Shown piece by piece: positions 8,344-63,769 of a stretch of 64,000 bases of DNA. The stretch covers positions 415,745 to 479,744 of the forward strand of contig NW_005434653.1 in NCBI RefSeq assembly GCF_000315625.1, in the 5' to 3' direction. A program made the translations under genes and the position numbers. Position 1 is the first letter of the stretch. Every line of letters starts with the position of its first letter. This stretch comes from Guillardia theta CCMP2712 (Eukaryota > Protista > Cryptophyta). Below the pieces are notes generated by a model. That model searched no databases and had not been told where the DNA came from. It worked only from the letters and a program-made list of their open reading frames with translations.

Positions 8344-10293
8344 TTAGCTAATAAGAGGACTCTGTTTGTCCAGAAGCCTCTCCACGTCTACGAAGACGGC
8401 GCCATACTCGTTCTTTAACCTTTCAAGCTCTGCTATCAATGCGCTCCTCCTCGGCCCATGCTGAGAGTCGATGGTGCTCTTCAGTCTAGCCCAGGCATCT
8501 TCAATGGCATCCTGGTATGGGTGCGTGTAGCTTATCTCAAACGTCGACGTGTTGAAATAATACGTCTTCCCATCGATCTTCCCCGTCTGCGGAACCCAAC
8601 CAGTCAAAGGATTTTGTTTGATGATTTCTTGTTTACGTTGCATTGCTTTTCTGCGAAAGAGCTCCTCTGACTTCTGACTTTGCAGCTCCATTTCTTTTCG
8701 GCACATCATAATCTTTCGCTCAAGTGTGGTGTACTTGGTCAAGAGATCAAGTTCGTCAGTCGCACATTCGCAAGCTACTGTCCATTGTGAGATCAGTTTC
8801 TTGTGATTGGCTCCCAATCGTTTGAGGGCTTTGTAGTGTCTCTGCGCAGCACTTGCCCGCATGCCTAGCCATCGTCGATAGCACCTTTGGATGACCAGCG
8901 CGGCCTCCGGTAACGACTTGAGGAGCTTTCGAGCAATGCAAGATCGGAAAGCACATTGCAGAGTTCTGACTGCCTCGTACGATCTCGCCTTTTCGAAACT
9001 TTCTTCACAACCAAACATTCGAATCCTGTACTTCCAGATGTTGTACTGATCTTCCTGGCTCTTTATCATGTCCATGTGCTCTACCATTCGGATTCTGATC
9101 AGCTCTTTCACCTTGGCATGCTGAACATGTATCCTCTCCAGGTATCTTCTTTTTCGGAGCCACCGCCTCACATGGCTTTGAAGTTTGTAGATGGTCTTTT
9201 CGAAATTTGTCATGGAATAAATCTGAATTTCTTCCAGGGGCTTTCGAAGTACGATCGACCCCATGCGCAAAGACCGTCTTCCAGTGCTCTTGTCGTTGGA
9301 GGGCTGACTCCTGATTTCGCTGTCGGGGTTGAAATCTTCGTGGAGGAGCTCTAGAACTTGAGAGTGCGGGAACGTTGGGGCTTCTCCTTCACTCTCGTAC
9401 TTGGGATGGCTCGAAACTTCAGCAAGGTATTGATGCCTGTCGATGTACTCCATGTCGTTTGATGGAGACGTGGTCGACGACATAGCTTCCATCTGCTGCA
9501 GCTGGTTCAAGTCATCTTCAGAGATCTCGTATTGCAAAGTCCACTTTCCCTCCTGCAACGCGCTCCTTTCTAATGATGGAGAAGGGCTCCTTACCCCAGA
9601 CTTTAGGCTCTGCCGAAGAGTTTTTCCAAGGAGAGTCGTGGAGTTGACCAACGAGTCCATGTTCTCAACGTCAGAGCCGCAGATTTCACCCCACAGTCTA
9701 GAGATGTTTTTCCTTGATTCCAGCAGTGACGACACGGCCAGACGGACCTCCATCGACACGTTGGAACCTTGGTCGTTGGATATCAAGGTTTCCAGTTCAT
9801 GGGCGACACGGGGCGAATTGCTATAGACCAGCTCGTCTGTCCTTGCCCCTCGTCCACCTCCATGTACTGATCGCTCCTTTCCTGTCCATGGTCTCGACCC
9901 TTTCTTCGGGGACATGCTGAGCCGCATGAAGCGTCTGGTATTCTCCCTCCTCACTTCATCCCGCTGCCTGGCTGAAACCGCTCTTCTCTGCCCATCACCA
10001 TGTGATCGACGTGTCGCAATGACCCTACATATCCTCGTGTGCAGATTCGTCAGTATTTCATCTTCCAGCTTCCTTCTGGACTCTTCTCGCAGTCCGATAT
10101 CTACTAGATCATGCTCGCCGCTCGGCAAATCATTTGTCATCATCCTCCTCACATCTGAATTTCTTTTTGCGATCATGGTGGTGAGCATCTTCACGACGAA
10201 AGCATCGCTGACATCTCCTTGCGACAATGTTGCACTTCTGCTCAGTCTCTCCTGCATGGTCGGTTGTATGTACGACAGTGGTGATGTGTTCAT
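8344..10293 (-). CDS. IQ-motif and WW-domain coiled-coil protein
   Basis: 649-aa ORF with IQ-like motifs (LQSHVRRWLRKR, LQCAFRSCIARK, IQRCYRRWLGMR) and a WW-like domain (GWVPQTGKIDGKTYYFNTSTFEISYTHP). Confidence 0.75.
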   Translation of the reverse strand: MNTSPLSYIQPTMQERLSRSATLSQGDVSDAFVVKMLTTMIAKRNSDVRRMMTNDLPSGEHDLVDIGLREESRRKLEDEILTNLHTRICRVIATRRSHGDGQRRAVSARQRDEVRRENTRRFMRLSMSPKKGSRPWTGKERSVHGGGRGARTDELVYSNSPRVAHELETLISNDQGSNVSMEVRLAVSSLLESRKNISRLWGEICGSDVENMDSLVNSTTLLGKTLRQSLKSGVRSPSPSLERSALQEGKWTLQYEISEDDLNQLQQMEAMSSTTSPSNDMEYIDRHQYLAEVSSHPKYESEGEAPTFPHSQVLELLHEDFNPDSEIRSQPSNDKSTGRRSLRMGSIVLRKPLEEIQIYSMTNFEKTIYKLQSHVRRWLRKRRYLERIHVQHAKVKELIRIRMVEHMDMIKSQEDQYNIWKYRIRMFGCEESFEKARSYEAVRTLQCAFRSCIARKLLKSLPEAALVIQRCYRRWLGMRASAAQRHYKALKRLGANHKKLISQWTVACECATDELDLLTKYTTLERKIMMCRKEMELQSQKSEELFRRKAMQRKQEIIKQNPLTGWVPQTGKIDGKTYYFNTSTFEISYTHPYQDAIEDAWARLKSTIDSQHGPRRSALIAELERLKNEYGAVFVDVERLLDKQSPLIS

Positions 10294-38166: not shown

Positions 38167-39974
38167 CTTCTTCACAGGCAGAAAAGCTGTACGCGCGTCT
38201 CCTCCATAGGAAGGAAGAGCAAGAAGGTCAGCCCTCAACAGCCTATCAACTCTGATTGACAAGTTGCAGACGCCGCATGGGCCAAGGAGATGCAAGCAAA
38301 CTCTTGGCTGCCGCACGGTGGAGCATACTTGTCTTGTCTTTACAGCTTACAGCCTCTCAGCCGAGGAGGAAGCTGCCGATGAAGTCGCCATGAAGGAGGA
38401 TTACATTTACCTCCTCCTCTCCTCCGGGGAGCCCGAGCGAGCATTGCAGGTGTCCCGAAGTTCCTCCTGCCTTCCCCCACCCGCCTCCTCCTCTCCGTCT
38501 CCCTTCACTCTCTCTCCCTTCCTCTCTTTCCCTCTTGTCCTCTCTCACTCCCTCCCTCCCTCCCTCCCTCACTCACTCACTCACTCCCTCCCTCCCTCAC
38601 TCCCTCCCTCCCTCCCTCACTCACTCACTCACTCACTCACTCACTCACTATCACTCACTCACTCACTCACTCTTGCCCCTTCCTTTCCCTCCCTCCCCCC
38701 AATCTCGGTCATTGTTTCCCTCCTCGTCCTCACTCGCTCCTCAGCTCTGCCTTCAAGTGTTGGCGCAAGAGCCCAACAGCGTCAACGCGCTCAAGTATCA
38801 GGCTGATGCGCTTGTCTGCCTCGAGCGAGCCGAGGTCAACCAACGACGCTCCATCCCGAACTCCTCCTGCTCCTGCTCCTCCTGCTCCACAACCACCACC
38901 ACAGCTCCTCCTCCTCCTCCTCCTCCTCCTCCTCCTCCTCTCCTTGGACACGCGTGCTCCTTTTGCTCCACTCCTACCTTGGTTGCTCCTCCTGCCCTGC
39001 CTTATCTCTCCTCTTTCTCTTCTCACGTCATTTCAGGAGGCGCTACCTCCTCTGGATACCCTGGCTGCTCTGCTCCTGGAGGCGATCGACAGCCTGGAGA
39101 AGGAGGGAAGAGAAACAGGAGGAGGCGACGAGCTTCTCTCCTCGTACAGAGAGGCTCTTGCTGAATGCTACAACAATCACTCCCTAGTCCTCACCTGCCT
39201 CAACCAGTCGGAAGCTGCTGCTCTCGTTCTCAACAAGAGCCTCCAACTATCTCCCAATCTGTCTGCTGCCGCATACAACGTTAGGATATCACCCTCGATT
39301 CCTTTCCTCGGCTCTCTCCATTTCCTGCGCACCTCCCCTCCCCTCCCCTCTCCTTCTCTCCTCCCCTTTTCTTTTACCATCTCCTTTCCTCCCCTCTCCT
39401 TGCCTCCCTTCTCCTCTCCTCTCCTCCCCTCCCCTCCCCTCCCCTCCCCTCTCCTCTCCTCCTGACCCTGATGACGGCAGCACACGCTGATGCTCCTCCC
39501 CTCCCCGCCCCTCTCCTCTCTACCCCTCTCCTCTCCTCCCCTCCCCTCCCCTCTCCTCTCCTCTCCTCTCCTCTCCTCCTGACCCAGATGACGGCAGCAC
39601 ACGCTGATGCTGTGGACGAGGGAGCAGCATATGGACGCCAGCTCCTTCTGGCTGAACCAGCGGAGCGTCGGCCCGAGGTGAGGAGGAGAGCAGCGACTGC
39701 GAGAGCATGAACATCCAGCAGGGGCGACCTTGTTACCCTCCAGCAGCATCGTGCGCATGCCATACAGGAGCTGGAAGCAAGCGATGCAAGGATAGTGTCG
39801 CACGTTGCGGGCTACTTGACCCCGTCGATGGTGTGCAAACCTTCAAGTCACTTACTATCTAACTTTACATATGTACAGGTGTACGCCCTCGACGTCATGG
39901 TCTTGGACTATTGCATCAGGGAGATCGAGGACTTGCAGTCTGCGTGCCTGCTAGAAAGTTTCTCACAACCCTGA
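34751..39974 (+). CDS. TPR-repeat protein, many exons, spans the assembly gap
   Basis: TPR-like helices (VLAQEPNSVNALKYQADALVCLER, AECYNNHSLVLTCLNQSEAAALVLNKSLQLSPNLSAAAYN). The model is approximate and could be two genes. Confidence 0.55.
35173..35272. other. Assembly gap (100 N)
   Basis: Run of N next to a poly-C tract. Confidence 1.
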
Positions 39975-39976
39975 CC

Positions 39977-42900
39977 TCACAGCTGATGCGAAGAATCTTT
40001 CAAGCTCTCAATCCAACTGTCCACCTCCTCCTTGCTCTTGCAGATGAACTCATACGTCCTGTTGTTCTGCACGTCCCTGATCACGAAGCTTCGCTCGTCC
40101 TGCCCGTGGTCCACCAGGCAGGCGGGGAGGAACAGAACTCGCTTCGGGATCGCGTTCGCCTTGAGCGCTTCGGCCCCTTCGAAGCACTTGAGCCTGTTTC
40201 CCACTAGGACGAAGAACCTCTCCTTGAGCACCGAAGTGAAGAACCCCTTCTGCCTCATCCAGCCTCTTTTCCTCTCGTAGGGCTTCGCCTGGTGACTCAG
40301 GCTCGACCTCCGGTCCTTGTCGCTCCACGTGCCCGCAAAGTTCTCCTTGAGAAAGTCTCGGATGTCATAGGCGAGGAGGCTGCTGAGGAGCTGCAGGAAC
40401 TGAGCACAGACCAGCCGCGTCCTCGGGTCCCTTGATGCGTACAGCTGCTGCATGGAGGTGCCAGGCAGCTCAAGGAGGATGTTGACATGAAAGCTTCCTG
40501 TCTGGTGCATGTAGGTAGCCGCTGCCTTTCCTTGCACGTAGTTGGACAGGCCGAAGTAGGAGCCTTTCCTGACCACCTTGTGAACCCCCTCACTCCTGTA
40601 CAGCTGGACTTCTCCTGAGTGGACGAAGAAGAGGCTGGAGCAGTTCTGAGCCGCCTCGATGGGCTCTCGAGCTCCCAGGCGGTGGACGATGCCGTACTTG
40701 CGGAGGAGGTAGGCGACCGAGGGGTTGTGGAAGACGTCCTCTTTGGACATCCTCCGAGACTCGGTGGCTGTCTCAGCGATCCTCTTGAGCAGGTTGTGGA
40801 CGTGATAGGCCTTGTAGGGGCTGGTGAAGGTAAGCTCAACCCAGTAGACCATCTCGTCGTGTAGCGCGTCCAGGTCCTCGGCGAACTCGATCGCGATGGT
40901 GGTGATCTGGAACTTGTGGGCGAAGGAAACCTTGAGGATCTGGTTATTCTGTATCAAGAGAGCCTTGGAGTCTACTAGCGGCCCGAAGATCATCGGGTCC
41001 AAGACGATGTAGTGGCTGAGGAAGATAATCCTCGACCTGAAGCTCTTGCCGATGCCGATGCGCTTGCAATGGCACTTGAAGCTCTGAACGAACCTCTGGC
41101 TCAGCGGCAGCGAGAACGTCTTGATGCAACTGAACGCACAGACGTCATGTTCACATCGCGACAAGACAAGAGATAGAGTGACCTCTGTCGCAGCTGCTCC
41201 TTGCTGTCTTGGTCGCCCACCACCGACTGCCTGTCAGTGAAAGCCTTCAGACATGCCATCCTGATCGCTTCGTTCTGAATCCTCTCCAGGTAGAGCGAAA
41301 GCTCGATGCTGACACCGTGATAGAACGTGACCAGGTCGACTTGGTCTACACCACCTACATCGATGGACTTGGTAGAATGGGCGGTAGAGTCCATGGCCTC
41401 CTTGTAGATGTCTTGCAGTAACTTCTTGTCTGCAAAGTTCAACATCTCCCCTTGCAACCTCGTCGACTCCTTCCTCAACAGCAACTTGGACGCGATCTTC
41501 TCGTACATCGTCTGCCCCCCGGACACGTCGGGCAGAGTTGAGTCAGTCCATGACGGCTGCCGCTCTAGGAACCTCTTGACGAGGCTCTTGGTGTGGCGGA
41601 ACTTGTTCGTGCCCTTGTCTTGTTGCTTGCTCTCAGCAGAGGACGAGCTGGACTTCAGGTGGACTTCTATCACCTCCGCCTCTCCCTCTCGCACCCTGTA
41701 CGCCATGGACGGCTGAGAGTTAAGAAACTGAGACAAGCCCAGTATGCTGCCCTCGCTATGGATACAAAACAGCGGGACTCGGACGTCGCCGTCCAAGGAG
41801 GCGTCAGGTACGCAGGTACCAAGGGGATGGTAGTTCTGAGCAGAGTCTGATCTCCGCACGACTCCTTCTACCACTCCACTCTTGACGAGAAAGATCTTAT
41901 CCTCCACGTAGCCCTCTGGTATGATGACCTCGTGCTTGCGGAAAGTTCTGACCGTTGCCATCGGGTTGTTCTCGAACAGCTTGAAGAACTTCTTCTTGTC
42001 GAAGTAAGGAACGTTCAGAGTCTCGTCGCCCACCAGGATTTCCTCCGTGCTCGTGTGCAGCGCAATCTGAAAGTTGGGGTCGCAAACAGCATGCGCCATG
42101 TCCCTGTGCAGCAGGTCGATGCTTCTCTTCCGAAAGACGATAATCTTCTGATCTTCATAGAAGGATGTGTTGAAGTGGAAGAAGCAGAACGTCTTTCGAG
42201 CTCCCGTCCTCCTACGGCTCTGTACATCTCAAAGTCACGGAGGAGAGGTCTTGAGATCAGATCGTTACCTGGTGCGTGAAAACTTCAACCCTCACGTCTC
42301 CTCGTACAATGACGTTGCACTGATAAACCCTGTGCCTCCACGACTCTTTACTCAACCCCTGAGAAATCACAAAGGGAACTCCGTATCGTTTGAGCGAGTC
42401 GAAGACAACAACTCTTTGGGAGATGATCACAAAGCTGTGGAGAACATCAACTCGGCACTGCACAAACAGTTCACCTCTCACCTGAAAACAAAGTCTTGCT
42501 TTCCGTTCAGCAGCCTTTCAGCCAAGAGTTCAAGTCTGTCCAGAGACATCTGTCTCACGGACCACGGATCTATCCCGCTGTACAGCACCGCCTCCACGTA
42601 GTGCACATATCGCTGCTGGCTCGGCCCCTCCACGCTCTGGTTGTGCTTCACCTGCTTCCTCCACATGCAGCTCGACCCCTCGTTCGTCACCTCGTCCAGC
42701 TCGTCGTCAGGGTTGAAGTCCTCCGTCCTCCTGTACGCGAACAGCTCCAGCGCGTCCAGCGCTGACCTACGATGCCCCGTCCACATCAGCAGGGCCGCGA
42801 TCATGACGCCTGTCCTGCCCTTGCCTCCCTTGCAGTGCACCACCACCACGTTCTTCCTGTCCCTCTGCAGCCACGACGACGCTTCCTGGCAGAAGTAGAT

Positions 42901-44613
42901 CAGCTCCGCCAGCAGAGGAGGCGCGTGATCCTCGAACGGGATGCGCTGGACTTGGTTGTAGAGCATCTGGGGATGGTAGTTCCCCATGGACCCGTCGGAG
43001 GAGGTATAGGTGTCGCAGAGGTTGAACACGAAGAACTTCCCGTGATGCCGCAGCGACAGGAAGCGAGCCACCACATGGATGTCGTTGCGGTACGCCGTGT
43101 GCCCGCCGAAGGCAGGAGCGGACATGGCGATGACGCGGTTGGTGATGTAGGTGAGGTCGAGGTCGTAGCCGTGCTTCTTGTACCTGCGCTTGTTCTGCGA
43201 GACTGCGGTCCTGAGCTTCTGGTTGACGGCGCCGCTGATCTTCCTTGCCCTGCGTATGCCGAGGAGGATACGGAGGACCCTTGCTCCGACAGCGACACGG
43301 GAGAGGATGCGGAGGCCGGAGGTTGGGTTGGTCCCCTTGACAAGGTACTGATCGAAGGCACCGGCTTCGTACAAGAGCCTTGAAGTCACTGCAAAGGTGC
43401 TGAACCAGATGACGACGAAGTCGAAGATGTTCCAAGAGACCATCCAGAAGCGCCTGCCAAGAGCCAGTTGCCTGAGGGATAGCTCGAGAACGAAGACGAA
43501 GCCAATGCTCACGTTGATGCCAATCTGCACGGGAGTCTGATGATCGGACTCGTTAGAGTCAAAGGCAAACAAGAGAACATTGATAACATCCGTGATGACA
43601 AGAACAAGTATAATGGCGTTGACCCACAATGACTCGATCGCGTTGGCTAAACTTTCTTTCCAGTATTTCACATCGTCATTCTCGTTTTCAACCAATTGCT
43701 CCCACTCGAGAAACACATCGTTGAGTTTTCCGCCAACAAACTCAAATGCTGTCGAGATCATGGCTTCAGACGAAGCCACGGCTGCTGCCTCGTTGTGTAC
43801 CGAAGCTTTCAGCTGGATACCACCTTCGATAGCCTCCAGAGTATCAGCAAGCGCAGGGACTTGCCATGTTGAAAGCTTCTGGATCGGAAACGTTGCAAGA
43901 GTGAAATGAAGCTGTGTCGGACTTCCACTGTGTCCCATAACTCTCTCCCCGCTCTGAGCTGCGAGATTGAACTTGAGGTCGAGCTCGGTTGAAGAGAAGG
44001 GAAGGATACGTGTCAGGTCCAACACGACGCGCCCGATCAATTCAGTCCTTGCGCTGTCCCAATGATACACAGAGATCGTGAGATTGCTGGCCTCCCCTCC
44101 TGATTCCAACTCACATCTTCTCCGCGCCCTGTCGAAATGATGCTCATGAACAAAGATTTCAAAAGTTTCGTTCCAGGTGTATTCAAGAGCACTGAACTTG
44201 ACGCTGCTCTGAAACTCTTGGCTATCAAAGGAAAACGTGCAGAAGCAATCACACGTGGTATCCGAACCTGTGCTCGGCAAGTCGACGGCTGATTTCAAGT
44301 TGATCAGGAGAGTCTGATGCAATGGTGCCGGCCCAGACCTCGGCTGGGGCGGGTTACCTTCATCCGTGATATCATGCTGCTCAATGAACTCTGCATCTGT
44401 GAAAGGATATATCTTCTCACCGGCCTCCAATGTTTCATTTCCTGTCCTGTGTCTTTCAGGTAGCTTCTTCTCTTTCCGTACATAATTGATGGAGAGCGGG
44501 TTGTTGATCACCACATCCAGGGTCTCGCATTCTTCCAGGACTATGTCCGAAGACAGGTCTCCATTGCCCTCGTGAGCTCCGTGGTATGGTCCAGCTTCAA
44601 CTCTGTACTCCAT
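39977..44613 (-). CDS. Voltage-sensing phosphatase (VSP/TPTE-like) copy A: C2-VSD-PTEN phosphatase-PTEN C2-cNMP-like-GRAM-cNMP-like-PH
   Basis: S1-S4 (LVITDVI, FVLELSLR, WNIFDFVV, LRILSRVAVGARVLRIL), VSQNKRRY..DLDLTYIT, PFEDHAPP, HCKGGKGRTG, VEGPSQQRYV, FHFNTSF, EVIIPEG..IFLVKSG, GRAM-like FSLPLSQRFVQSFKC, PH GWMRQKG..ERFFVL..VDSWIESL; three short GT-AG introns link ORFs 42478-44646, 42257-42481, 41101-42099 and 39977-41164. Confidence 0.88.
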
Positions 44614-47600
44614 ATTGAGGAGAATTTCAAACTCTTTCTCTGACAATCCTGTTCCTCAAGGTTCTAATTAACTTCGATGTCACTTTCCATCCTGGCTCAC
44701 AACTCCCTTGTTCTGCTGTCCTTCCCTGCGATGAATGAGATCGGAGATCAACTCATTCAAGAGAGTTACAACCTTACTCTTATTGAATCTTCTCAACCAT
44801 GGCGCGCTCCCTGCTTCTGATCCCTTGCGCCTTCAGTATGGTCCTGACTGTACCATGGTTCGCAATTTGGGTCCCCATACCACCCCTTCATTTCAGGTAT
44901 TCGAAGGGGTGGGGGTGATGAAGGAAGTGGGGTCGGTCAATCCGGGACGGCTGAGACTCAAGTACCCCACCCCCAACCCAACTCCAATCTTTTTGCCACC
45001 CTTTTTGAGAGCACAGATGAGGGGGTCCTTTCATAGCCTCTCAATTAGTGAAAGTCACTGAGAGTGGTGAATCAGGAGTTCTGCCCGGGGTCACTGAGGG
45101 GTGGGGGTAGGGGGGTACTACGGTACCGGCAGTGCTCAAAAAAGTGAGGAAAGAAAAACGCAACTTCGAACTGACAGCTGAAATATTAGTCAATCCTCTT
45201 CACGCTCTCAGCCTTTTTTACTCAAAGTTAATGCCCGGCCGCGGCCGCAGTGCGCCGGGCCCGGGGTCACCGTACGGTGGTGATGGTCGGACTGAGCCCG
45301 GCCTGGAGTCTGCCGCCGGCCGCGCAGTGCTCCGAGGCTACTCCGGTGACCGGGGCCCGGGGAGTCCGAGGCTCACTGAGTCAGGCTCGGAGCGCCCGGG
45401 CCCTCTGAGTGACCGTCGGCGAGGCTCAGAACTGAGGCCTCAGCGAGTTGACTCGGAACTGAGCCGGGCGGGCCCCCGGGCGGCCCCACCGGTCGCTCAG
45501 CTGATTTTTTTTATAATAGAGTTTTATCATTCTAGGTCGACAGGCATAGATCATAGATACTCGGGAGTAGGGGAATTCATTATTGGGTATTAATATTATA
45601 ATGGTACAAACAGTTATAGCTTACTGGTAGCTAGAGATGACCTTTTTCTACCAGGCTGGGAGATATTTCAGAAACAGCGCTACTGTTGCTTCTTTCTTAT
45701 AACACATTTAATGTACAAAACTTTAAAATTATTTTTCCTTTAAAAGTTACAGGGCAAAGGACCATGGCAGGACGCCTGCTAGAGGAGGGTTTGGTCTGAG
45801 ATGGAAGGAGGCGGGGCAAGACGAGTGGCACGTGGCGTGCATGGTTGAAAGAAGATCTCGATTTCGCTCGTGTGAAGATGAAGGAATGAAGCTCTGAGGA
45901 ACGAACTCCTGTCGCAGTCGACGAGGAACAGCATGAATACCCAGCGGACGTTGTAGTTCAACACAACATGCCTAAAGAATCGGTTGTGTTGGAGGTGGAT
46001 ATACAGGACGAAGGTCCTATCGTCTCTATAGCTGAGGACGATTCAGGAGCAACATCAGGCAAAGGGCTGAACATCCCCCTTGAGCCAACTGTCTCCCTAA
46101 GTACCGTGAGGGTCAAAAAGCACAAGCTGCGCGCCCCGGACTTTCCTCTGCCGCCGCCTCCTGCTAGAGATCGCACGGGGATAGAAGTGCTCCAGCCTGG
46201 AGAGAAGATCTATCCTTACACTGATGCTGAATTCATCGAGCAGAACGACATCACTGATGAAGGCATCCCCCCCGAGCCGCGCGCTGGACCGCCGGCCGAC
46301 CACCAGAGGCTGCGCATGCTTGTGAGGTCGGCGACGGATCTCCCTCAGATGGACCTTGCAGGAAAGTGCGACTGCTACTGCAAGGTGTCCTTTGACAATC
46401 AGGAGCATCAATCTACGATCAAGTTCAACTGCTTCGACTGCTCCTGGAACGAGACGTTCGAGTTCTTCCTGCACGAGGCTAACATCAACTTTGCCAAGTT
46501 GTGTGGGCCCAGTGGGAGCTGCGGCAAGACCATCATGGTTGCCTTGTATGATTGGGACAGGCTGAAGAGAGCGGATCTCGTCGGAAGGATCTCCATCGAC
46601 CTTGCTCAGATCGTCAACATGTCATCGGAGGGCCAGGACTTCACTGTTGCTCTGATGTCTCAGACGGGAGAAGACGTGATAGGGCACAACGGAAGGGCGA
46701 CGCAGGTCTCATTCCACATACAGATGTTGCCCATCGCTCAGATGAGGCACTGGCAACCGCCTTCGCTGTCACAGACTCTGTCGACAGTAGGAGGAGAGTC
46801 GAAACTCAAGGGCGACTTCACTCGAACAAGCTCGACGATGAGCGGCCTGATTCGAAGCAACGCATCTGTTCAGACAGTTGGAAACACGATCAATGATATG
46901 TTCTTGGAATGGGAGGACGTGGAGCAGGAGGAGAACGACAATGACAAGTACTGGAGGGAGCAGCTGGCCAGAGCGATGGAGTCCCTGTGGATCAATGCCC
47001 TTGTCCTTTGTCTGGTAGTTACCGACGTTGTCAGCATCCTTGTGTTTCTGAACGACAGCTCAACCTCCAGCGAGCCTCCTGTACAGATCGGCATCAACAT
47101 GAGCGTGGGAAGTGTCTTTGTCATAGAGCTCACTTTGAGGCAACTTGCGCTCAGAAGGCGGTTCTGGTTCAGCATCTGGAACATCTTTGACTTCGTCGTC
47201 ATCTGGTTCAGCGCCGGAATCATGATCTCACGCTTCATCATGGTGGATGGAGCAGGAGGGATAACAGGAGGTCTCTCAGGCACAAACACAGCCTCCGGCC
47301 TCCGCATCCTCTCCCGTGTCGCTGTCGGAGCAAGGGTCCTCCGTATCCTCCTCGGCATACGCAGGGCAAGGAAGATCAGCGGCGCCGTCAACCAGAAGCT
47401 CAGGACCGCAGTCTCGCAGAACAAGCGCAGGTACAAGAAGCACGGCTACGACCTCGACCTCACCTACATCACCAACCGCGTCATCGCCATGTCCGCTCCT
47501 GCCTTCGGCGGGCACACTGCCTACCGCAACGACATCCATGTGGTGGCTCGCTTCCTGTCGCTGCGGCATCACGGGAAGTTCTTCGTGTTCAACCTCTGCG

Positions 47601-48052
47601 ACACCTATACCTCCTCCGACGGGTCCATGGGGAACTACCATCCCCAGATGCTCTACAACCAAGTCCAGCGCATCCCGTTCGAGGATCACGCGCCTCCTCT
47701 GCTGGCGGAGCTGATCTACTTCTGCCAGGAAGCGTCGTCGTGGCTGCAGAGGGACAGGAAGAACGTGGTGGTGGTGCACTGCAAGGGAGGCAAGGGCAGG
47801 ACAGGCGTCATGATCGCGGCCCTGCTGATGTGGACGGGGCATCGTAGGTCAGCGCTGGACGCGCTGGAGCTGTTCGCGTACAGGAGGACGGAGGACTTCA
47901 ACCCTGACGACGAGCTGGACGAGGTGACGAACGAGGGGTCGAGCTGCATGTGGAGGAAGCAGGTGAAGCACAACCAGAGCGTGGAGGGGCCGAGCCAGCA
48001 GCGATATGTGCACTACGTGGAGGCGGTGCTGTACAGCGGGATAGACCCGTGG
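42562..48052. repeat. Near-perfect inverted repeat, arms 42562-43322 and 47292-48052 (about 760 bp), spacer about 4 kb
   Basis: Arms are reverse complements. Only three differences noticed by eye, all synonymous (ACG/ACT, GCG/GCC, GAT/GAC). Confidence 0.9.
45217..45500. repeat. GC-rich palindromic island between the divergent VSP genes, starting with TTTACTCAAAGTTAA
   Basis: Direct observation; contains the symmetry axis (about 45307) of the inverted repeat. Confidence 0.55.
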
Positions 48053-51000
48053 GTTAACCAGCGGCTGTTTCTGTCGGGGATAGAGTTGTGCGGGTCCCGG
48101 CTCTTCGATGGAAAGAGGAATGTATTCTTAAGGTGAACAAGAGAATGAGGAGAGGAGAGAGGGGGGAGAGAGAGGAGGGGAGGGGAGAGTGAAGGAAAGG
48201 GGTCATGAGAGAAGAGTGGAAAGGTGCCTATGTGTGTTTGTGACTTCTCTTTTGTGCTCTGCAGCTATACGGTGAGCTGTCAAAGAATCATGATTCTGGA
48301 CTCTCTCAAGAGATTTCGGATTCCCCAACAAATTTCTCCCCCTGTAGGACTTCAGGGGTTGAAAGCCATTCTACCAAGTGAAGCTGTTCTGTGGGGAGAT
48401 GTTCGGATAGAATTCTTCGCACATAAGGTGAAATAGTTTCCTCTTTCGCATTGCTCTACTCGCTCTTGTCTTCCAACCTTCCAAGTCTCCCTTCTCATGC
48501 TGCCGTTCTGATGCCCTTCCATTGTTGAGTTGTTGTTTTCCTCTGTCTGCTCTCTCGGAGACTTTTCATGTTCTTCCCTGCTGACTTCGAATGGTTTAGA
48601 ACTTGAACACGAACAAGAGAAAGCTCATCTGGTTCATCACCTTCAACACCGCTTTCCATTCGAGGACGGATAAACTGGTATTCCCAAAGAGAAGCATAGA
48701 CATGCTGCACAAAGACAAGAACAACACTGTCTGCGACATTGGCTTCAAGATCACCCTAACGCTCTCCTCCTCCATCGTCCGTTTCCACAGCCAAAAGATG
48801 CTCAGTGACGCCTCGTCGCACATCACAGACCTCAAGGCGTTCTTCGACCTCTTCACCAACAACCCATGTGCGAGGAGGATCTGCCTGAAGAAGGACCAGT
48901 ACTTGATCACGGAGGGAGCGAGGGAGGAGAGGCTGTTCATGGTGGAGAGCGGTGTCCTCGAGGGAGTGATCGTGAGCTCCCGGGATGATTCCGTCTCCTA
49001 CCATGCTCTCGGGAGCTGCGTGCCGCAGTCGGGAGGGCAGCAGAACCTGAGGGTCCCGGTGATCTGCATCCATGGCAAGGGGGCGATTATCGGGGCCTCG
49101 CAGTTTCTGAACCGCAGCTCTGCCTTCGGGTATCGCGTGAGAGGACAGGAGGCTGTGGTGATCGAGGTGCTGAAAGACAAGCGCGATGAGGAGGAGCCGG
49201 AGATCTTGCCTTCTCCCACCGTGGACTCCAACGGCAACGGGATGGTGCGAGCATCGATGGAGTCGACGGGCTCGCAGAGGTCGACGATGGAGGATGCACT
49301 GCACAGGCTGTCGTCCTTCCTGCGCGGGGAGTCGTCGTCGAGGATCACGAGGAGGTTTCATGCGGAGGAGGACAGGCGGCTGCTGGAGGAGATCTTCTAC
49401 AACTCCACAGTCTCCAGCGCCTCCGTGCGATTCGATCTGTCGGACGTGAGGGTCCTCGGGGTCAGCGATGCAGAGCTGCAGCACTTCTATCATGGTCTGA
49501 GCATAAGCCTTTCCATCAAGCTCGACCGATCGCAGCTCGAAGCAACGCGCATCGCGAGCCTGAAGTCATTCACTGACGCGCAGACTGCAGTAGGCAACCA
49601 GGATGTCCGGGAGAAGCTCCGAGATAGGTGTTAATTCCCCTCATCCCTTGACTTGCCTCCCTCCCTCCCTCTTGATCCCTTCCTCTCCCTTCATTCTCAT
49701 TCTTATTCTCATCACAACCTCCCCTGCTTCCAAAATCTCCCTTACTCCTCTGGCATCTAATCTTTCCTTTCATCTCCTCCTTTACGTTGAATGCGTCCAT
49801 CTCAATCGCTCCCTTCTCCCCTCTCTTCGCTCCCTCCTGCGCGCAACCTTCTGACGGGCCTGGGCAGCTGCATCAAGACCTTCGACCTGCCGCTCAATCA
49901 GAAGCTCCTCCAATGCTTCAAGTGTCACTTCAAGAGGATGGGAGACAACAAGTCAAACAGGACGCGCATCATCTTTCTCAATCAGTTTGTCATCATCGAT
50001 CCTCTCATCTTCGGCCCCCTCGTTGACTCGAGCTCCATCCTCCTCCACCACTCTCAGATCCATGGCGTCGCCTTCGCCAACCAGTTCCAGGCCACCACCG
50101 TCGTCGTCCACTTCTCGGAGCAGAAAGATGACGTCACCGAGGACGTACAGTTCTCCTGCGAGCTCACCTTCCAGAATGCCAGCCGGGCCCACCAGATCCT
50201 GAACTTGTTCGAGAAGATCATCAGGATTTCAGCCGAGTCGGGCTTCGCCGACAGGGAGCTGGTCTACCAGAACCCGGCAGTCGCCTACATCCTCCACAAG
50301 TGCGGCAAGGTGCACCACGTGGGCAAGAAGGAGCTCTTCCGAGCGGCCCGCAACTCCACCAGCCTCTTCTTCGTGTATGCTGGAGAAATCAAGTTGTGCC
50401 GGCCCGACGGGGTTCACAAGATCGTCAGGAAGGGGTTCTTCTTCGGGATGTCCAACTTCGTGCAGTGCAAGCCGGCTGCCACCTACACGGCGCAAGGAGG
50501 AACGACGAGGACCAATATCGTGCTCGAGCTCCCCAACGACTCCGTCGCTGTTCTCCAGGAGATCCCCAGCGGCTCTTCAGCGACCTCGCGCAGCTACATG
50601 CATGCGAGGTTCTTCCACTACCTCTGCACCCTGCTCGAGAGAGAGTACAGGTCTGTTCCTGTTGGTGGGGAGGGGAGGGAAAGGGAGGGGGGAAAGAAGG
50701 GAGAGGTAGTGAGGAGGGTAGCAGGAAGGAGGGAGGGGGGGGGGAGAAGGGGAAAGTGGAGGAGGAGGATGTAGAGGAGGATGAGATGCTGACAAAGAGA
50801 AACAGGGACGTGCTCAAGGAGATTTTTCCCGGCAGCTGGTGTCAGTCGGACTTTCACATGCCAGAGAGCCAGGGGGCGAAGAAGGGGGAGAGGAAACATG
50901 GATGGATGAAGCAGAAGGGCTACTTCAGTGCGGTATGGAAGCAAAGGTTCTTCGTGCTCGACAAGGACGTGCTCAACTGCTTCACGGAGAGCGATGCGCT

Positions 51001-51214
51001 GCGGCAGAACGCTACTCCCAAGAGGAGGCTGCTGCTTGCTGACTGCGAGGTGGAGTATGACGGCGAGGGCTCCTCGTTCATGCTGCGCGACAACTGCAAC
51101 AAGAGGGACTTTCATCTTGTCTGCTCCTCCCAGCTCGAGGCGAGCGAGTGGGTGTCATCGATCAAGTCGGGCATCGCAGCTGCTGCTGCCCAACCTCGTC
51201 GATGGCGAGTGTAA
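45968..51214 (+). CDS. Voltage-sensing phosphatase copy B, same domain order (exons about 45968-48132, 48265-48427, 48600-49627, 49868-50650, 50806-51214)
   Basis: Same motifs as copy A; C2 DLPQMDLAGKCDCY..YDWDRLKRAD; PH HGWMKQKG..QRFFVL..EASEWVSSI. Confidence 0.88.
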
Positions 51215-51959
51215 TGGAGCGAGCAGGAGAACGAGTGGGAGGAGGAGAACGAGTGGGAGGAAGAGAACCAGTGGGAGGAAGAGAAGTTTTTGAACATTTT
51301 GGAGGAGAAAGGAGTTTTTCCGGATGTGAGAAGAGGGCAGAAAGGGATGTAGGGAGGGAGGGAGGATGAGATTTTGTGAATGTCCGTGAATGTTGTTGAT
51401 GTTTCATTAAGAGGCAACTTGTCGAATTTGATTGAATAAAACTAATGAAATGAACGATTTTTGACAAGCTTGCAGGAAGTTATTACTACCCCCACCCCTT
51501 ACTATTACAGGAGTCCTCTTATCCAGATAGACCACCCCTTGTGCGGACCCAGGAAATGCTGGGCCGTTGACGTTGACCAGAAGGAGAGTCGTGAAGGATG
51601 AAGATGGAGAAGGAGAGCGTGAGGGGAAGGCTGCGAAGAGAGGAGGGAGGAGGAGCAGGAGGAGAGAACAAGGGAGAGGAAGAGGAAAAGAAAGGAGACG
51701 AGAGAAGGGGAAGGAAGAGAGAGGGACAGGGACAAGTAGAGGGAGAGCGCGCGGGGGGGGAAGGGGAGGGGGAGGGGAATCGAAGCAATAAAGACGGGTA
51801 TCAGAAAGCAAGGACAAGGACAAGGACGAGGACAAGGAAAAGGAAAAGGAAAAGGAAAAGGACGAGGACAAGGAAAAGGACAATAGGAGGGAGCATGGCC
51901 CCGAAACATCAAGCAGATGCCATTGAAACATATTCGAGTGCCGATGATCTCCCTGACGT

Positions 51960-54900
51960 TGCAGCAGATTTTAGCCGCAGGACGAGCAGCAGCATGAACT
52001 GAAAACGCCCCATGAGCATAACAGGCTCAGGCTCCAACCTGCTCGCTCAGGTGCTGCTCGAGCGCGGGCACAGCTTCTCTCAGGTGCCCTCATCACCCCC
52101 ATGGTGGAGGAGGGGAAGTGACGTGAAGACCTGCAGGAGGCTGGTGTGTCGGACCTTTCGCAGCTGATCTCGAAATGTGAGCTGCTCTGTGAGACCCTGA
52201 GGAGGCAGGAGGGTCACCCACAAGGTCGGCAGATGGGAGATGGAGCGATGGCGCTGACATGTGTCGGCAGGACGGGGGGAGGGGAGGGGAGCGCGAGACG
52301 AGTTTGACAGGTGGCTCGGGCGATGTCAGGACATAGCCCGGAGTGTGCAGGATGAATCGAGGAGGATGCAAGATAGAATGAGCATCGCCGAGCATCAGCG
52401 GCAGGGCAGGCGGTCGTGGCTAGAGGAGAAGAGGAGCAAGCAGCTCAAGACTATGAGCCTTGCTGGGAAAGTTTGGAGCAGGTGGATGGAGACTGCTGCG
52501 CTCTCAAGGGAGGTCAGGATCTTCTCGAGGAGAGAGATCGCGATGGGGAGGTCGGAGCTCCAGACAAGGTGGGTGATGAGGGAGAGGAAGAGAGGGACGA
52601 TGCTGTGGTGGCTTCACGTGGCGAGGACAAAGCGGGAGAGGAGGGAGGAGCTTCTTCGACAGACTCTCTCCCTGAAAGTGAGGGAGTCAAAGACCAAGTG
52701 CTTCTACATCTCAAGGCTCTTCTTTCACGGCTGGACGGAGCTGGTGGTGTCGTGCAAGTACAGCAGGAGGGTTGTGTCTGCTGTGCTGCGGAAGAGGAGG
52801 ATGAATGTGTTGAGGGCTGTGCTCGAGGAGTGGTTGGACCATGTCAACGACGCAGTTGGCTTCTTTGCTGTGAAGAGATTCTTCGATGGGGATGGGAAGC
52901 TGATGAGATGTCGACCTGGTAGGACAACTTCACTCTCCTCGCTGATCTTGACGCCTCCTCGCAGTCGGGCTTCATCTCTCTGACGCGGCGGTGGAGGAGG
53001 CACACGATCGAAGCGCAGGAGGTGAGAAGAGATGCTGCTGCAGCTGCAACGAGGCTGACGAGCTGTGCCAGTCGAGCGCTCTGGCAAGGCAGAGACAAGC
53101 CCGCTGGAGATGTCATGGAGGGCATGCCGGCTGAGTTGGGTAACAGCAAGGGCATGCAAGGAAGCGCCAGTGACGCGTTGCTGCTGCCTTGCAGGCGCTC
53201 ATGTCGCGGAGGTGGGAGGAGAAGATCAGGCTGGTCAAGATGGTAGTGGTGATGTTAGCTGTGTGGCTAGGAGCACCTGCTGGTGACCTGCTGGGGGTTG
53301 ACAGGTGTGCAAGTGGAGCTTCTGCGTGCGGGAGAGGTGAGTGTTTCGAAATCTCTGCAAGCAATTTTCAAATTCTCTGCAGCAAACTTCGGGCCGAGCA
53401 AGAGATTACAGGTACTTGACATCCCTTGCGTTGAACCGACTGATTTCCGTGCTTTTCATCGTCCAGGAGCTGCGGCAGCGTGCTATGCATCCGAGTAGAA
53501 GAGGAGGAGGGAGGAGAGAGGAGGGAGGAGGGAGGAGGGAGGAGAGGCCCGGGAGGAGTAAGAAGGAGCTGCGGAGGAGGGGGGGGGAGTAGAAGGAGGA
53601 TGGGGGAGAAAGAAATGCTCTGATTGGCTTCTCAGTTTGAACGTCAAACACTGCAAGAAGTTGAAGAAGTGCTCTCTTGTTCAACTTGTCGCCCATCGAT
53701 GGTACAGGCAAGAGCAGCGATGAATTCTGAGGCTTTGACTGACTTCTTGTCAGATCGTACTGGACGCAGGCAGCGAGGAGGAGGTGAAGGGGGTGGGAGG
53801 AGGTCACAGACGCCACTGACGCTTGTCGGACTCTCAAGGTGGATCCTGTCTCAGTGTCTCTTGGCCATGAGGAGGCTGGAGAGAGTTCAGAGGTGACGCT
53901 CCTGCCAACATGCTCCCGCACGCGCTCATATCATCCCCCAGGGTCGTCAAGTCCTGCGCTGCTGGCCGACGGGACAGGTCGTACATGCAGAGGAGGTGCG
54001 TGCGATCCCAGGATGACAGCCGGGCAGGAGCATGCGGATGGTGCTGCAGGTGTGGGAGGTGTCGCTAGCGCTGTCCAGGCACGAGAAGGCTTCTGATCAG
54101 TGAGCCCTGCGGCCCTCGGGGCTGGCGCGCGCGGCCCTGACGCTGCCGGCCAGGCTGACCAGCGAGCTGCGAACGGTGAGCTCGAGGCGGGACGAGCTTG
54201 TTGCGGAGAGGGACCAGAGCATCTCGGAGGTGCAAGACGCTTGTCGGGAGCAGGTGGACACTGGAGGCTCCTGCTTGCCCGGCCCCTTGACTTGTGGATC
54301 AGGTCGGCACCCTTGAACATGCTCTCAACTGCAGTGTGAAAGAGAACCAGCAGCTGCTCGAGGAGAACAAGGAAGGACAAGCTGCTGCTGCATGGTTGCC
54401 GCTGACTTGTGGATCAGAGCCTGTTGGAGGATTTGCAGAAGTGGACGGGGAGGATGGTGGAGAGAGGTGAGAAATGGAGGGAGAGCGATATAGAGACAGA
54501 AAAGGAGGAAGAGGAAGAAGAGGAGGAAGATCATGATGACGATGATAGGAACTATGATGATTTGGTAGAGGCATCGATGACCATGATGCTTACGATGACA
54601 ATGACGATGATTGAAATGAGGAGGAGGAGGAGGAGGAAATCAGAAAGAATAAGATGGAAATGATGCAGGTCATCGAGCAATCCAAGAGAATCTGAGTCCG
54701 AGGAAGAAGAAGGTCTGCAAAGAAAACCTCTCCTGCTCTCAGACTGACTTGTGTCAAACAGAGCTTTCGCAGTAAGATGGAGCAGATCATCAATGCAAGT
54801 GACGATGAGAGGTCTTCCTCCTTCCTCCACCCGTCCTCCTTCTTCCTGCCTCCTTCCTGCCTCCTTCCTGCCTCCTTCCTCTCTAGTCGTCATCTCTTCC

Positions 54901-61925: not shown

Positions 61926-63769
61926 ATGCCTGGGAAGGATGGAGAGAGCGAATCGATCGCAGACAAGTACTTTGTCTGCACAGAATGCCTGGTGGAAGGA
62001 AACGTGCAGAGCTTCGTAGATCTCTTCTACCTTACTCACTCTCAAGACGCCGCCAAGGAGCAGTCGCAGCAGCAGCAGCAGCAGCAGAGCCAACAGCAGG
62101 CATTGAATGAAGAAAGCACAACGAGTTTCGCCACGTATGATGTCTTGCAGTTCCTCAAGAACAAGCTGACGGAGGCGGAGGTGGCACAGCGGGAGGGAGG
62201 ATACGACATCGTCTTCGAGTCGTTCATGGAGACAGCTAGGCACTTCAAGAGCAAGTCGGACCACAAGAGGGTTATCTACTTCCTCACAAAGTGCCTTGAG
62301 GTCGCCAGGCTGTCACAGGATGTTGCGAGGGAGGCAGAGGCGAACGAGATGCTGGGGCTGACCAAGGAGGAGATGGGGCAGCTCAAGGAGGCGATACAGT
62401 ACCACGAGGCGCACAGGGACCTTGTCTCTTCCTACGGGAGGGAGATGACCGACCAGGCAGGGCACAACCTGATCCGAGCATACCGGCGGCTGGCGGAGGA
62501 GCTGCAGAAGCAGGGGGATGTCGAAGGTTCCATCATGTACTTCCAGAAGAGCCTCAAGTCTGCCATAGACATCAACGACCAGGAGGAGGAGGGGAAGTCG
62601 TACCGGCTGCTGGGATCGGCGTACCTGCTGCTGCAGGATTACGAGCTGTCGGCGTCCAACTTCCACAAGTTCCTGAGCATCTGCCAGGAGACGCAGGACA
62701 GAGTGTCGGAGGGGCTCGCATGCTCGCACCTGGCGACCGCGTACGAGGCGAAGGGGGACAGAGCGTCGTCGATCAAGTTCCTGGAGGAGTATTACGAGAT
62801 TGCACTGTCGACCGGGGAGCTGAACTCGCAGCGAGAGGCTTGCGGAAGGTGGGAGGAGGGTGAGGGTGCAGGGAGGAGGAGAAGATGGAGGGCGAAAGAG
62901 GAATGGAGAAGGAGGGGCAAGGTGGGGGGCAAGGGGAGAGAAGGGGAACGGGCAGGGGGAGGGGGGAGGGAAGGACGGGTTTCAGAAAGGAGGGGAGGGG
63001 AAGGTTGGGAGGGGAGGAGGGAGGAGAATGGGGGGGAGAGGAAGAGAGGGGAATCGATTTGACAGCACATGACAAGGTTGGGGATTATCTTCAATGCGGC
63101 CGCAGACTTCAATCGGTCGGTGGAGTATTTCACGAAAGCGTTTGAAAGTGAGAGGAGAGGAGGAGAAGCCGTAGCTGTAAATTGACGCTCCTTCTGCTCA
63201 GTCTCGCGCTCCCTTGGGGATAAAAAGGCCATCGACGTTGATAGGTATATCCCCGCTATATACCCGCTCTCCCTTGCTCTGGGTTCTTCTGCTCCTTATT
63301 CCCTTCCCTGCATCTCCTCCCCCCCCCTTACGTCTTCTTTCCTCTTTCATTCAGCCTTGTTAGTTGTCTTGAACTGCTACCTCGCGCGATAGCTAGTTCT
63401 CTTCTTCCTCTCTCCCCCGTACTGTTCTCCCCTTGCCAGCTCTCGTCCTTGTCTGCTTCCTCAGTTTCGTGCAGAGTCAACCTGGGCATAGCACGAGGAT
63501 GCGCGAAGCAGAAAGACTACATCAGGGTGAGAGGAGGAAGAGGGAAAGTTGGGTGAAGAGGAGGAGGAGGAGGAGGAGGAGGAGGAGGAGGAGGAGGAGG
63601 AGGAGGAGCTTGAAGGAGATCAGGAGGAGGAGGGGAGGACGGTTGAGGGAGAAGAGAGGGGGGAGCAGAGGAGGTGAAGGTGGTTTGACCTGTACCTCAG
63701 GTTGTCAACTCAGAGTTCACCTCCCTTATGAGCTGGAAAAGTCGCCGGATCCCCTTCGAGCGAGAGTGA
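61926..63769 (+). CDS. TTC29: Tetratricopeptide repeat protein 29-like (flagellar/axonemal TPR protein)
   Basis: VCTECLVEGNVQSFVDLFYL, LTEAEVAQREG, multiple TPRs, C-terminal LMSWKSRR; layout as recalled for TTC29. Confidence 0.75.

Follow-up and report, generated by a model that had tools for sequence, protein, structure and literature searches.

Introduction

Among enzymes that respond directly to membrane potential, voltage-sensing phosphatases (VSPs) are the standard example; those of animals are built from three modules, and their role in physiology is still debated. To our knowledge, VSPs have been studied only in animals. The present analysis concerns a 64,000-nucleotide stretch of the cryptophyte Guillardia theta CCMP2712 (assembly GCF_000315625.1, contig NW_005434653.1, forward-strand positions 415,745 to 479,744), referred to below as the window. 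Within it, positions 39977-51214 hold two paralogous genes on opposite strands that are transcribed divergently, gene A on the minus strand and gene B on the plus strand. In the product of each gene, a complete VSP core lies between an N-terminal C2 domain and a 680-residue tail. It is considered fairly probable that genes A and B are expressed nuclear paralogues from a family of extended voltage-sensing phosphoinositide phosphatases in cryptophytes, and that their products would work as Ci-VSP does.

The closest described proteins are Ci-VSP, TPTE2 and TPTE. Like them, the G. theta proteins join a four-helix sensor directly to a SQNKRRY...DLDLTY motif, and as in Ci-VSP and TPTE2 the motif is followed by a CX5R phosphatase, with a Gly in the P-loop and a Glu and a Gln in the TI loop, and then by a PTEN-type C2 domain. 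Identity to Ci-VSP and TPTE2 amounts to 40-45% over the enzyme, with an E-value of 1e-42 over sensor and enzyme. Unlike Ci-VSP and TPTE, the G. theta proteins add the N-terminal C2 domain, the long tail and an acidic insertion of about 20 residues, and they belong to an algal multigene family. With PTEN they share the phosphatase and C2 folds, an N-terminal basic lipid-binding motif and a WPD-like FEDH loop, whereas PTEN is soluble, carries Ala in its P-loop and Thr-Ile in its TI loop, and has no voltage sensor.

Two further groups of proteins resemble the additions. SLC9C1, HCN and KCNH proteins likewise hold a voltage sensor and a domain of the cyclic-nucleotide-binding (CNB) fold in one polypeptide; unlike these, the G. 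theta proteins have a lipid phosphatase as effector in place of a pore or exchanger, two CNB-like domains split by a PH fold, and no canonical ligand residues. Myotubularins consist of an N-terminal PH-GRAM domain and a CX5R phosphoinositide phosphatase and have no transmembrane sensor. The likeness lies in the presence of a GRAM-type PH fold and a cysteine-based phosphoinositide phosphatase in one protein, but the phosphatase subfamily and substrate are others, the GRAM-like domain of the G. theta proteins is not N-terminal, and a sensor is present.

The most distant VSP met in the literature is a predicted protein of the choanoflagellate Monosiga (PMC3440755), and a 2024 review names VSPs and SLC9C1 as the non-channel proteins with voltage sensors (PMC13095418). 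In the active site, G365 of Ci-VSP stands for the Ala of PTEN, while E411 and Q415 correspond to T167 and Q171 of PTEN (PMC4322731). The initial annotation of this DNA, which was made from the letters and a list of their open reading frames (ORFs), knew of no description of the architecture, and a full-text literature search likewise found none, either of this architecture or of an algal VSP.

A complete voltage-sensing phosphatase core in both genes

The same layout is found in both genes, and it agrees with the eight domains originally proposed: a C2 domain, a four-helix voltage sensor, a linker with a phospholipid-binding motif (PBM), a PTEN-type phosphatase, a PTEN-type C2 domain, a CNB-like domain, a GRAM-like PH fold, a second CNB-like domain and a PH domain. 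The parts and their order are present in both proteins, and their coordinates are collected in Table 1.

The sensor was recognised over S1-S4 by the Pfam family Ion_trans (E 1.5e-7 in gene B, 9e-9 in gene A). Alignments to TPTE2, Ci-VSP and domain IV of Nav channels indicate that the residues of the charge-transfer centre are kept, with Phe-x-x-Glu...Arg in S2 and Asn-x-x-Asp in S3, and S4 of gene B contains seven Arg and a terminal Lys, the Arg being spaced as in TPTE2. The arginine-rich four-helix sensor with charge-transfer residues in S2 and S3 that characterises VSPs is present. Directly behind it, the linker SQNKRRYKKHGYDLDLTY aligns without gaps to both Ci-VSP and TPTE2 and provides the direct basic connection (NKRRY) that is likewise characteristic of the family.

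When the first exon of gene B was compared with solved structures, the best match was human TPTE2 over sensor and enzyme together (E 1.4e-42, query 305-643), followed by Ci-VSP (5e-39) and PTEN (1e-33). A coral TPTE2-like cluster also matches across sensor and enzyme (query 314-644, 40% identity). The P-loop HCKGGKGRTG aligns gaplessly with Ci-VSP and TPTE2, and P-loop families of the PTP/DSP type are matched in Pfam at an E-value of about 5e-10 in both genes. The VEGPSQ segment carries Glu and Gln at the spacing of E411 and Q415 in Ci-VSP, which together with the P-loop Gly gives the active site of a VSP; the register of this TI loop was read by eye and with the help of PMC4322731, as a 62-residue query around the loop produced no PDB alignment. 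HCKGGKGRTG, VEGPSQ and SQNKRRY each occur in both genes, and the VSP-type catalytic signature and coupling linker on which the initial annotation had based its expectation are confirmed for the pair by the Ci-VSP and TPTE2 alignments and by PMC4322731.

The association between these active-site states and a voltage sensor was also seen more widely, among the best 150 hits in a library of 1.8 billion proteins. Of the 26 proteins in which both a sensor and a P-loop could be recognised, 25 have the Gly form of the P-loop. A sensor was detectable in none of the 39 proteins with the PTEN-type combination of Ala and Thr, where the detector overlooks some animal VSP sensors and the class without a sensor is impure.

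A PTEN-type C2 domain follows the phosphatase, as it does in VSPs. The family PTEN_C2 (PF10409) is matched by the third exon of gene B alone at a sub-threshold E-value of 5e-5, because introns split the domain, and collinear relatives reach 1e-10 to 4e-14; gene A gave no Pfam match to PTEN_C2. Within the phosphatase domain, the acidic insertion of about 20 residues follows the P-loop helix and precedes the TI loop (47900-47980, identical in gene A), and relatives carry insertions of other lengths at this site.

Gene structure and transcript evidence

The start codons of the two genes lie 1,354 bp apart, and the intergenic region between them presumably acts as a bidirectional promoter. In gene B the only stop of the spliced frame is the terminal one, and immediately upstream of the ORF of gene A lie three in-frame stops. 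Introns 1-3 have homologous positions and phases in the two genes, with lengths of 47, 49 and 53 nt in gene A against 132, 172 and 240 nt in gene B. Intron 4 of gene B (50651-50805) is 155 nt long and purine-rich, and gene A is uninterrupted at the corresponding place (40340-40400).

In run X1, one assembled contig of 4,862 nt aligns to 45769-51329 as five segments, and the four joints between them coincide exactly with the GT..AG introns of the gene model. The same four joints were recovered in run X2 at a depth of 281, while introns 2 and 3 are retained in the DNA-like run X13, where they are read straight through. Since the contig is full-length and free of introns, and the frame stays open over every joint, the long single-transcript architecture of gene B stands. 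The proposed splicing into one transcript is thereby borne out for this gene from one untranslated region (UTR) to the other; a transcript ending after the PTEN-type C2 domain would have spoken for separate downstream genes, and the transcript found spans the whole tail instead.

For gene A, run X2 contains a contig of its own with a depth of about 108, together with loose ends on either side of a tract that the two genes share, which makes expression of gene A probable as well. From the raw RNA-seq run X18, only 7 reads could be placed, and they yield no transcription start, strand or expression level.

A gene-conversion tract covering S4, linker and enzyme

The shared tract is 774 nt long with 7 mismatches and contains a 754-nt core (47292-48045) with only 2, both of which are synonymous. 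It extends from the end of the S3-S4 loop to the last residue of the phosphatase domain, and, the tract being nearly free of mismatches, S4, the linker and the entire enzyme are identical in both proteins. Outside the tract, genes A and B show 46-70% identity at the DNA level and about 40-50% at the protein level, and S1-S3 of the sensor as well as all accessory domains have diverged, with identities of only 40-60%. In runs X13 and X2 the tract appears as a separate 754-nt contig with raised depth, which argues for two true copies. An assembly artefact was considered as a source of the identical tract and rejected, as depth is raised in both the DNA-like and the RNA run, as expected of two true copies.

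The N-terminal C2 domain

Sensing of Ca2+ by the N-terminal C2 domain, as assumed at the outset, is plausible in gene B alone. All five loop aspartates of synaptotagmin-1 C2A, which we take to be the Ca2+ ligands, are aligned in gene B, as expected of a Ca2+-binding C2 domain. In gene A, His and Glu occupy two of the five places (read partly by eye), and the domain matches solved C2 domains only weakly.

Directly before the C2 domain (gene B 46190-46300, aa ~78-110; gene A 44320-44420) runs a motif of the form Y-P-[YF]-T-D-A...D-[IV]-T-[DE]-[DE]-G-x-P-P-x-P-R-[AS]. It is kept in genes A and B, in Teleaulax and in environmental relatives, and more loosely in a transcript from the MMETSP collection, and no known domain covers it.

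The tail: CNB-like, GRAM-like and PH domains

The 680 residues behind the VSP core comprise a CNB-like domain, a GRAM-like PH fold, a second CNB-like domain and a PH domain. A profile of CNB-like domain 1 built from nine family members matched 68 sequences in the PDB, all of the CNB fold, with PKG as the best (9e-6). These matches cover only the first strands of the roll, and a family-specific insertion stands at the position expected for the nucleotide-binding cassette.

The last exon of gene A was modelled with AlphaFold from an 11-row alignment, giving a mean pLDDT of 70.7, against a pLDDT of 33 for a single-sequence model. Residues 1-125 (pLDDT 80-93) are predicted to fold into a sandwich of seven strands capped by a helix, which is the GRAM fold, and compare with PH domains at Z 11-12.5; the PH-like domain of Lam6 (5yqr, Z 11.5) shows the highest identity among the PH-superfold matches, at 15%. 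Pfam GRAM (PF02893) is not matched by either gene at E<=0.1. The best match by ESM features is a GRAM cluster at 0.76, which is below the level at which chance matches are rare and serves as a lead only, and a GRAM-like F-x-L-P...K-C motif at the N-terminus is a resemblance seen by eye. The proposed GRAM domain thus holds at the level of fold and N-terminal motif and fails at that of Pfam membership; as modelled, it is a GRAM-like PH fold and not a member of Pfam GRAM.

Residues 130-266 of the model form a CNB beta-roll, which superimposes on CAP with Z 13.2 and a root-mean-square deviation of 2.5 Å over 123 residues. Foldseek returned at least 428 hits at E<=1e-3 for this CNB-like domain 2 of gene A, and the 50 listed are all CNB-fold proteins. 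A profile of the domain matched PKG best in the PDB (1.3e-5), along with a Crp/Fnr regulator and the CNB-homology domains of KCNH channels; profile and model both match these KCNH domains and the CNB domain of SLC9C1. The Pfam family cNMP_binding (PF00027) scores 17.6-21.7 bits (E 2e-4 to 4e-3) against a cut-off of 27.5, so that all four instances in the window are sub-threshold, while CNB-like domain 2 of the Teleaulax orthologue scores 46 bits and lies above it.

In cyclic-nucleotide-binding domains, the Gly-Glu of the cassette and an Arg hold the ribose and the cyclic phosphate. In CNB-like domain 2, the FGE of PKG is aligned with FGL in gene A and FGM in gene B, Leu or Met thus standing for the cassette Glu, and the canonical place of the Arg, counted from the cassette Gly, is occupied by Ala in eight of eight aligned family sequences. 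The cassette Gly-Glu is retained in the Teleaulax and P0228 proteins. Because the cassette Glu and Arg are replaced and CNB-like domain 1 has its insertion at the cassette, canonical binding of cAMP or cGMP by these domains appears unlikely. The CNB-homology domains of KCNH channels are not known to bind nucleotide, and it is these domains that the CNB-like domains look like. The earlier suggestion that the cNMP-like domains sense a ligand is accordingly weakened: the fold is present, and the canonical Glu and Arg are absent.

The C-terminal PH domain (PF00169) scores 52 bits in gene B and 40 bits in gene A, above the cut-off of 25.1, and a basic K-x-R-F-F motif was identified by eye.

A cryptophyte family under purifying selection

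The gene pair belongs to a cryptophyte multigene family and is not a one-off. A search of the G. theta assembly (87,145,349 bp in 669 contigs) identified at least three further loci with a collinear layout, at C150:26759-31541, C14:649310-654337 and C4:1133931-1138027. In the C150 and C14 paralogues the PH domain lies between CNB-like domain 1 and the conserved helix segment, not at the C-terminus. The NCBI models of these two are incomplete, at 219 aa and 165 aa (GUITHDRAFT_80690 and GUITHDRAFT_44334), and GUITHDRAFT_80690 maps to C150 without mismatch, save for one gap in the model. At C48:142743-144890, a single open frame of 993 aa contains two matches to the phosphatase portion of the query.

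Full-length relatives emerged from look-ups of clusters and from a region search that used the Teleaulax protein as query. They include a complete ORF of 1,716 aa from Teleaulax amphioxeia, which has no C-terminal PH domain, an MMETSP transcript of 1,412 aa, and an environmental protein of 1,638 aa that occurs on many contigs; fragments of the family were identified in Hanusia phi and Baffinella frigidus. The core common to the family reads [C2]-sensor-phosphatase-C2-CNB-helix-GRAM-like-CNB, and the PH domain is mobile. A word-indexed homologue search with the tail exon or its alignment returned only one environmental ORF, 98% identical, because length limits and introns hide the relatives, and a scan of metagenome loci with an alignment gave no matches. 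A bacterial or viral origin of the genes was rejected on the grounds of their spliceosomal introns, their cryptophyte relatives and the identity of the scaffold.

A metagenome contig of 2,147 bp (ENA ERZ930064) is 95.3% identical to the 3' part of gene A, which indicates that the sample contains a close Guillardia relative. Between this contig and the last exon of gene A there are 27.5 synonymous and 9.5 non-synonymous differences, corresponding to a dN/dS of 0.09. The 53-nt intron 3 lies at the same place and is 15% diverged; divergence is faster in this intron and in the 3' flank than in the exon. The low dN/dS of the last exon argues that the tail is functional and under purifying selection.

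Feature coordinates and genomic surroundings

Table 1. Positions of the gene pair, its domains and related features within the window.
Feature	Position	Strand	Remarks
Gene B coding region	45968..51214	+	1,515 aa, 4,548 nt, 5 exons; single frame after splicing, joints agree with reads
Gene B exons	45968-48132, 48265-48427, 48600-49627, 49868-50650, 50806-51214	+	built from ORFs and GT..AG sites
Gene B mRNA assembled from RNA	45769..51329	+	5' UTR ~199 nt, 3' UTR ~115 nt; run X1 contig
Gene A coding region	39977..44613	-	~1,495 aa from first in-frame ATG, 4 exons
Gene A exons	44613-42482, 42434-42269, 42219-41183, 41129-39977	-	GT..AG introns; gene model from sequence
Shared divergent intergenic region, presumed bidirectional promoter	44614..45967	.	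gene B transcript start at or before 45769
Gene-conversion tract, gene B arm	47279..48052	+	aa 438-695: S4, linker, whole phosphatase domain
Gene-conversion tract, gene A arm	42562..43335	-	inverted repeat of gene B arm
Gene B N-terminal C2	46307..46612	+	PF00168 E 1e-16; alignment to 2r83
Gene A N-terminal C2	44005..44313	-	PF00168 E 6e-11; Ca2+ ligands partly replaced
Gene B voltage sensor S1-S4	46982..47374	+	PF00520; alignment to TPTE2 9c49, Ci-VSP 4g7v, Nav domain IV
Gene A voltage sensor S1-S4	43240..43632	-	PF00520
Gene B sensor-phosphatase linker with PBM SQNKRRY...DLDLTY	47375..47467	+	residue-by-residue alignment with Ci-VSP, TPTE2
Gene B PTEN-type phosphatase domain	47468..48052	+	TPTE2 1.4e-42, Ci-VSP 5e-39, PTEN 1e-33
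Gene B P-loop HCKGGKGR	47777-47806	+	part of phosphatase domain
Gene B TI loop VEGPSQ	47981-48007	+	part of phosphatase domain
Gene A PTEN-type phosphatase domain	42562-43146	-	counterpart of gene B domain
Gene B PTEN-type C2	48053..48770	+	introns 1 and 2 interrupt; PF10409 E 5e-5
Gene A PTEN-type C2	42049-42561	-	counterpart of gene B domain
Gene B CNB-like domain 1	48828..49181	+	profile versus PDB
Gene A CNB-like domain 1	41650-42000	-	counterpart of gene B domain
Gene B conserved helix segment FYHG...LK.F.D before GRAM-like domain	49485..49625	+	kept in all paralogues and cryptophyte relatives
Gene A conserved helix segment	41185-41325	-	counterpart of gene B segment
Gene B GRAM-like PH-superfold domain	49869-50237	+	counterpart of gene A domain
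Gene A GRAM-like PH-superfold domain	40760..41128	-	AlphaFold model pLDDT 80-93
Gene B CNB-like domain 2	50265-50650	+	counterpart of gene A domain
Gene A CNB-like domain 2	40358..40732	-	cassette Glu and Arg replaced; Z 13.2 to CAP
Gene B C-terminal PH	50888..51172	+	PF00169 E 1.1e-13
Gene A C-terminal PH	39992..40276	-	PF00169 E 5.7e-10

Long low-complexity tracts with a strong strand skew lie at both 3' ends of the gene pair (38260-39800 and 51220-52000). They show Ser/Leu/Thr/His/Pro-type repeats on one strand and Gly/Glu/Arg repeats on the other, with a GC skew of -0.39 at 38-40 kb. Neighbouring ORFs in the window include a protein kinase domain (E 2e-40), an IQ-motif protein and a TPR protein (62-919, 8344-10293 and 61926-63062), and no functional link to the pair is evident from them.

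Proposed mechanism

With four transmembrane helices, both termini of the protein would be cytoplasmic, so that the C2 domain, the phosphatase and the tail could reach the inner leaflet. A change in membrane potential would shift S4, whereupon the basic linker would engage the membrane and the active site, and the enzyme would then dephosphorylate PI(4,5)P2 or PI(3,4,5)P3, as in Ci-VSP. The accessory domains may tune the place and timing of phosphatase action: the C2 domain, in gene B at least, could mediate Ca2+-dependent docking to the membrane, the PH and GRAM-like domains could bind the lipid substrate or product, and the two CNB-like domains may serve as intramolecular regulatory modules, as in KCNH channels, rather than as receptors for cAMP or cGMP.

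A more elaborate form of this mechanism is speculative and has a modest chance of being correct. The protein would be a polymodal enzyme, in which turnover takes place only when depolarisation coincides with Ca2+, sensed through the C2 domain, and with the binding of the lipid that the enzyme itself consumes or produces to the PH and GRAM-like domains, while the CNB-homology domains would lock the linker between sensor and phosphatase. In a flagellate that has channelrhodopsins as its photoreceptors, such an enzyme might convert photocurrents directly into a lipid signal.

Weighing of the evidence and alternative explanations

Several observations weigh against the view that both genes encode extended VSPs working as Ci-VSP does. 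At one S4 position Ci-VSP has Arg where the G. theta proteins appear to have Leu, as read by eye from the TPTE2 alignment, and the acidic insertion is not present in the Ci-VSP, TPTE2 or PTEN alignments. The sensor taken alone matches Nav domain IV at 1.6e-7, TPTE2 at 3.7e-6 and Ci-VSP at 6.4e-5; it is thus no closer to VSPs than to the channel domain, and the cryptophyte proteins may either share their ancestry with the VSPs of animals or stem from a separate fusion of a sensor to a PTEN. The splicing of gene A is modelled from the genomic letters, not from reads, and, with CNB-like domains that lack the canonical ligand residues, one of the supposed inputs may not exist. Additionally, we infer voltage dependence, substrate and gating direction from sequence.

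Different explanations of the same architecture have to be set beside these points. It is unlikely, though by no means negligible, that the four-helix domain is a mere anchor or a vestigial sensor and that control is exerted by Ca2+ or lipid through the C2, PH and GRAM-like domains and not by voltage. In its favour, the core is flanked by three modules that bind lipid or Ca2+, and as of 2012 it had yet to be determined whether human VSPs are electrically active (PMC3440755). However, S4 keeps seven arginines and a terminal Lys at the spacing of TPTE2, the charge-transfer centre retains Phe and Glu in S2 and Asp in S3, and S4 falls within the tract that is held identical between the paralogues. 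That the CNB-like domains are true receptors, which would make the protein a cAMP/cGMP-gated voltage-sensing phosphatase and the enzyme counterpart of HCN and SLC9C1, seems quite improbable in view of the Leu or Met at the cassette Glu of genes A and B, the Ala at the canonical Arg place in every aligned family member, the restriction of the CNB-like domain 1 matches to the first strands of the roll, and the presence among the matches of KCNH CNB-homology domains, which are not known to bind nucleotide. Such receptors would fit the CNB fold itself (Z 13.2), the Teleaulax orthologue, which exceeds the cNMP_binding threshold at 46 bits and keeps the cassette Gly-Glu, and the recurrence of a voltage sensor with a CNB domain as a pairing, for which SLC9C1 is described in PMC13095418.

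The enzyme might, alternatively, be a PTEN-like 3-phosphatase for the tonic removal of PIP3 rather than a VSP-like phosphatase acting on PI(4,5)P2, a proposal that must be rated very unlikely, since Gly in the P-loop and Glu in the TI loop are both VSP states and track with the sensor-bearing proteins of the library. PTEN itself nevertheless aligns at 1e-33, and the linker motif is the equivalent of PTEN's own N-terminus. Moreover, the Gly-to-Ala change alone leaves the specificity of Ci-VSP unswitched (PMC4322731). The partial NCBI models of two G. theta paralogues, at 219 and 165 aa, would suit the idea that the extended layout is an artefact of gene prediction, with the tail belonging to another gene downstream, but for gene B this is already refuted by a single contig that runs from UTR to UTR with four introns removed and a frame open at every joint. 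Complete transcript ORFs of 1,412-1,716 aa with the same order in other cryptophytes leave the idea scarcely credible for the family.

Implications for cryptophyte signalling

The reading of genes A and B as extended VSPs points to a multi-input enzyme through which membrane voltage may be coupled to lipid signalling in some algae. This reading concerns both the voltage-sensor and the phosphoinositide fields, with the functional claims resting on sequence, and it draws on a family whose public gene models in this cryptophyte are fragmentary. In this transcribed and selectively maintained multigene family of a culturable alga, evolution has built on the VSP core, with modules of the Ca2+, lipid-binding and CNB types added to the unit of sensor, linker and phosphatase. 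The family members are natural constructs for asking how added inputs gate electrochemical coupling, and their domains may become new parts for voltage-controlled lipid tools. Since the alga is unicellular, it is also a system where the phenotype of a VSP could be read from motility or from responses to light.

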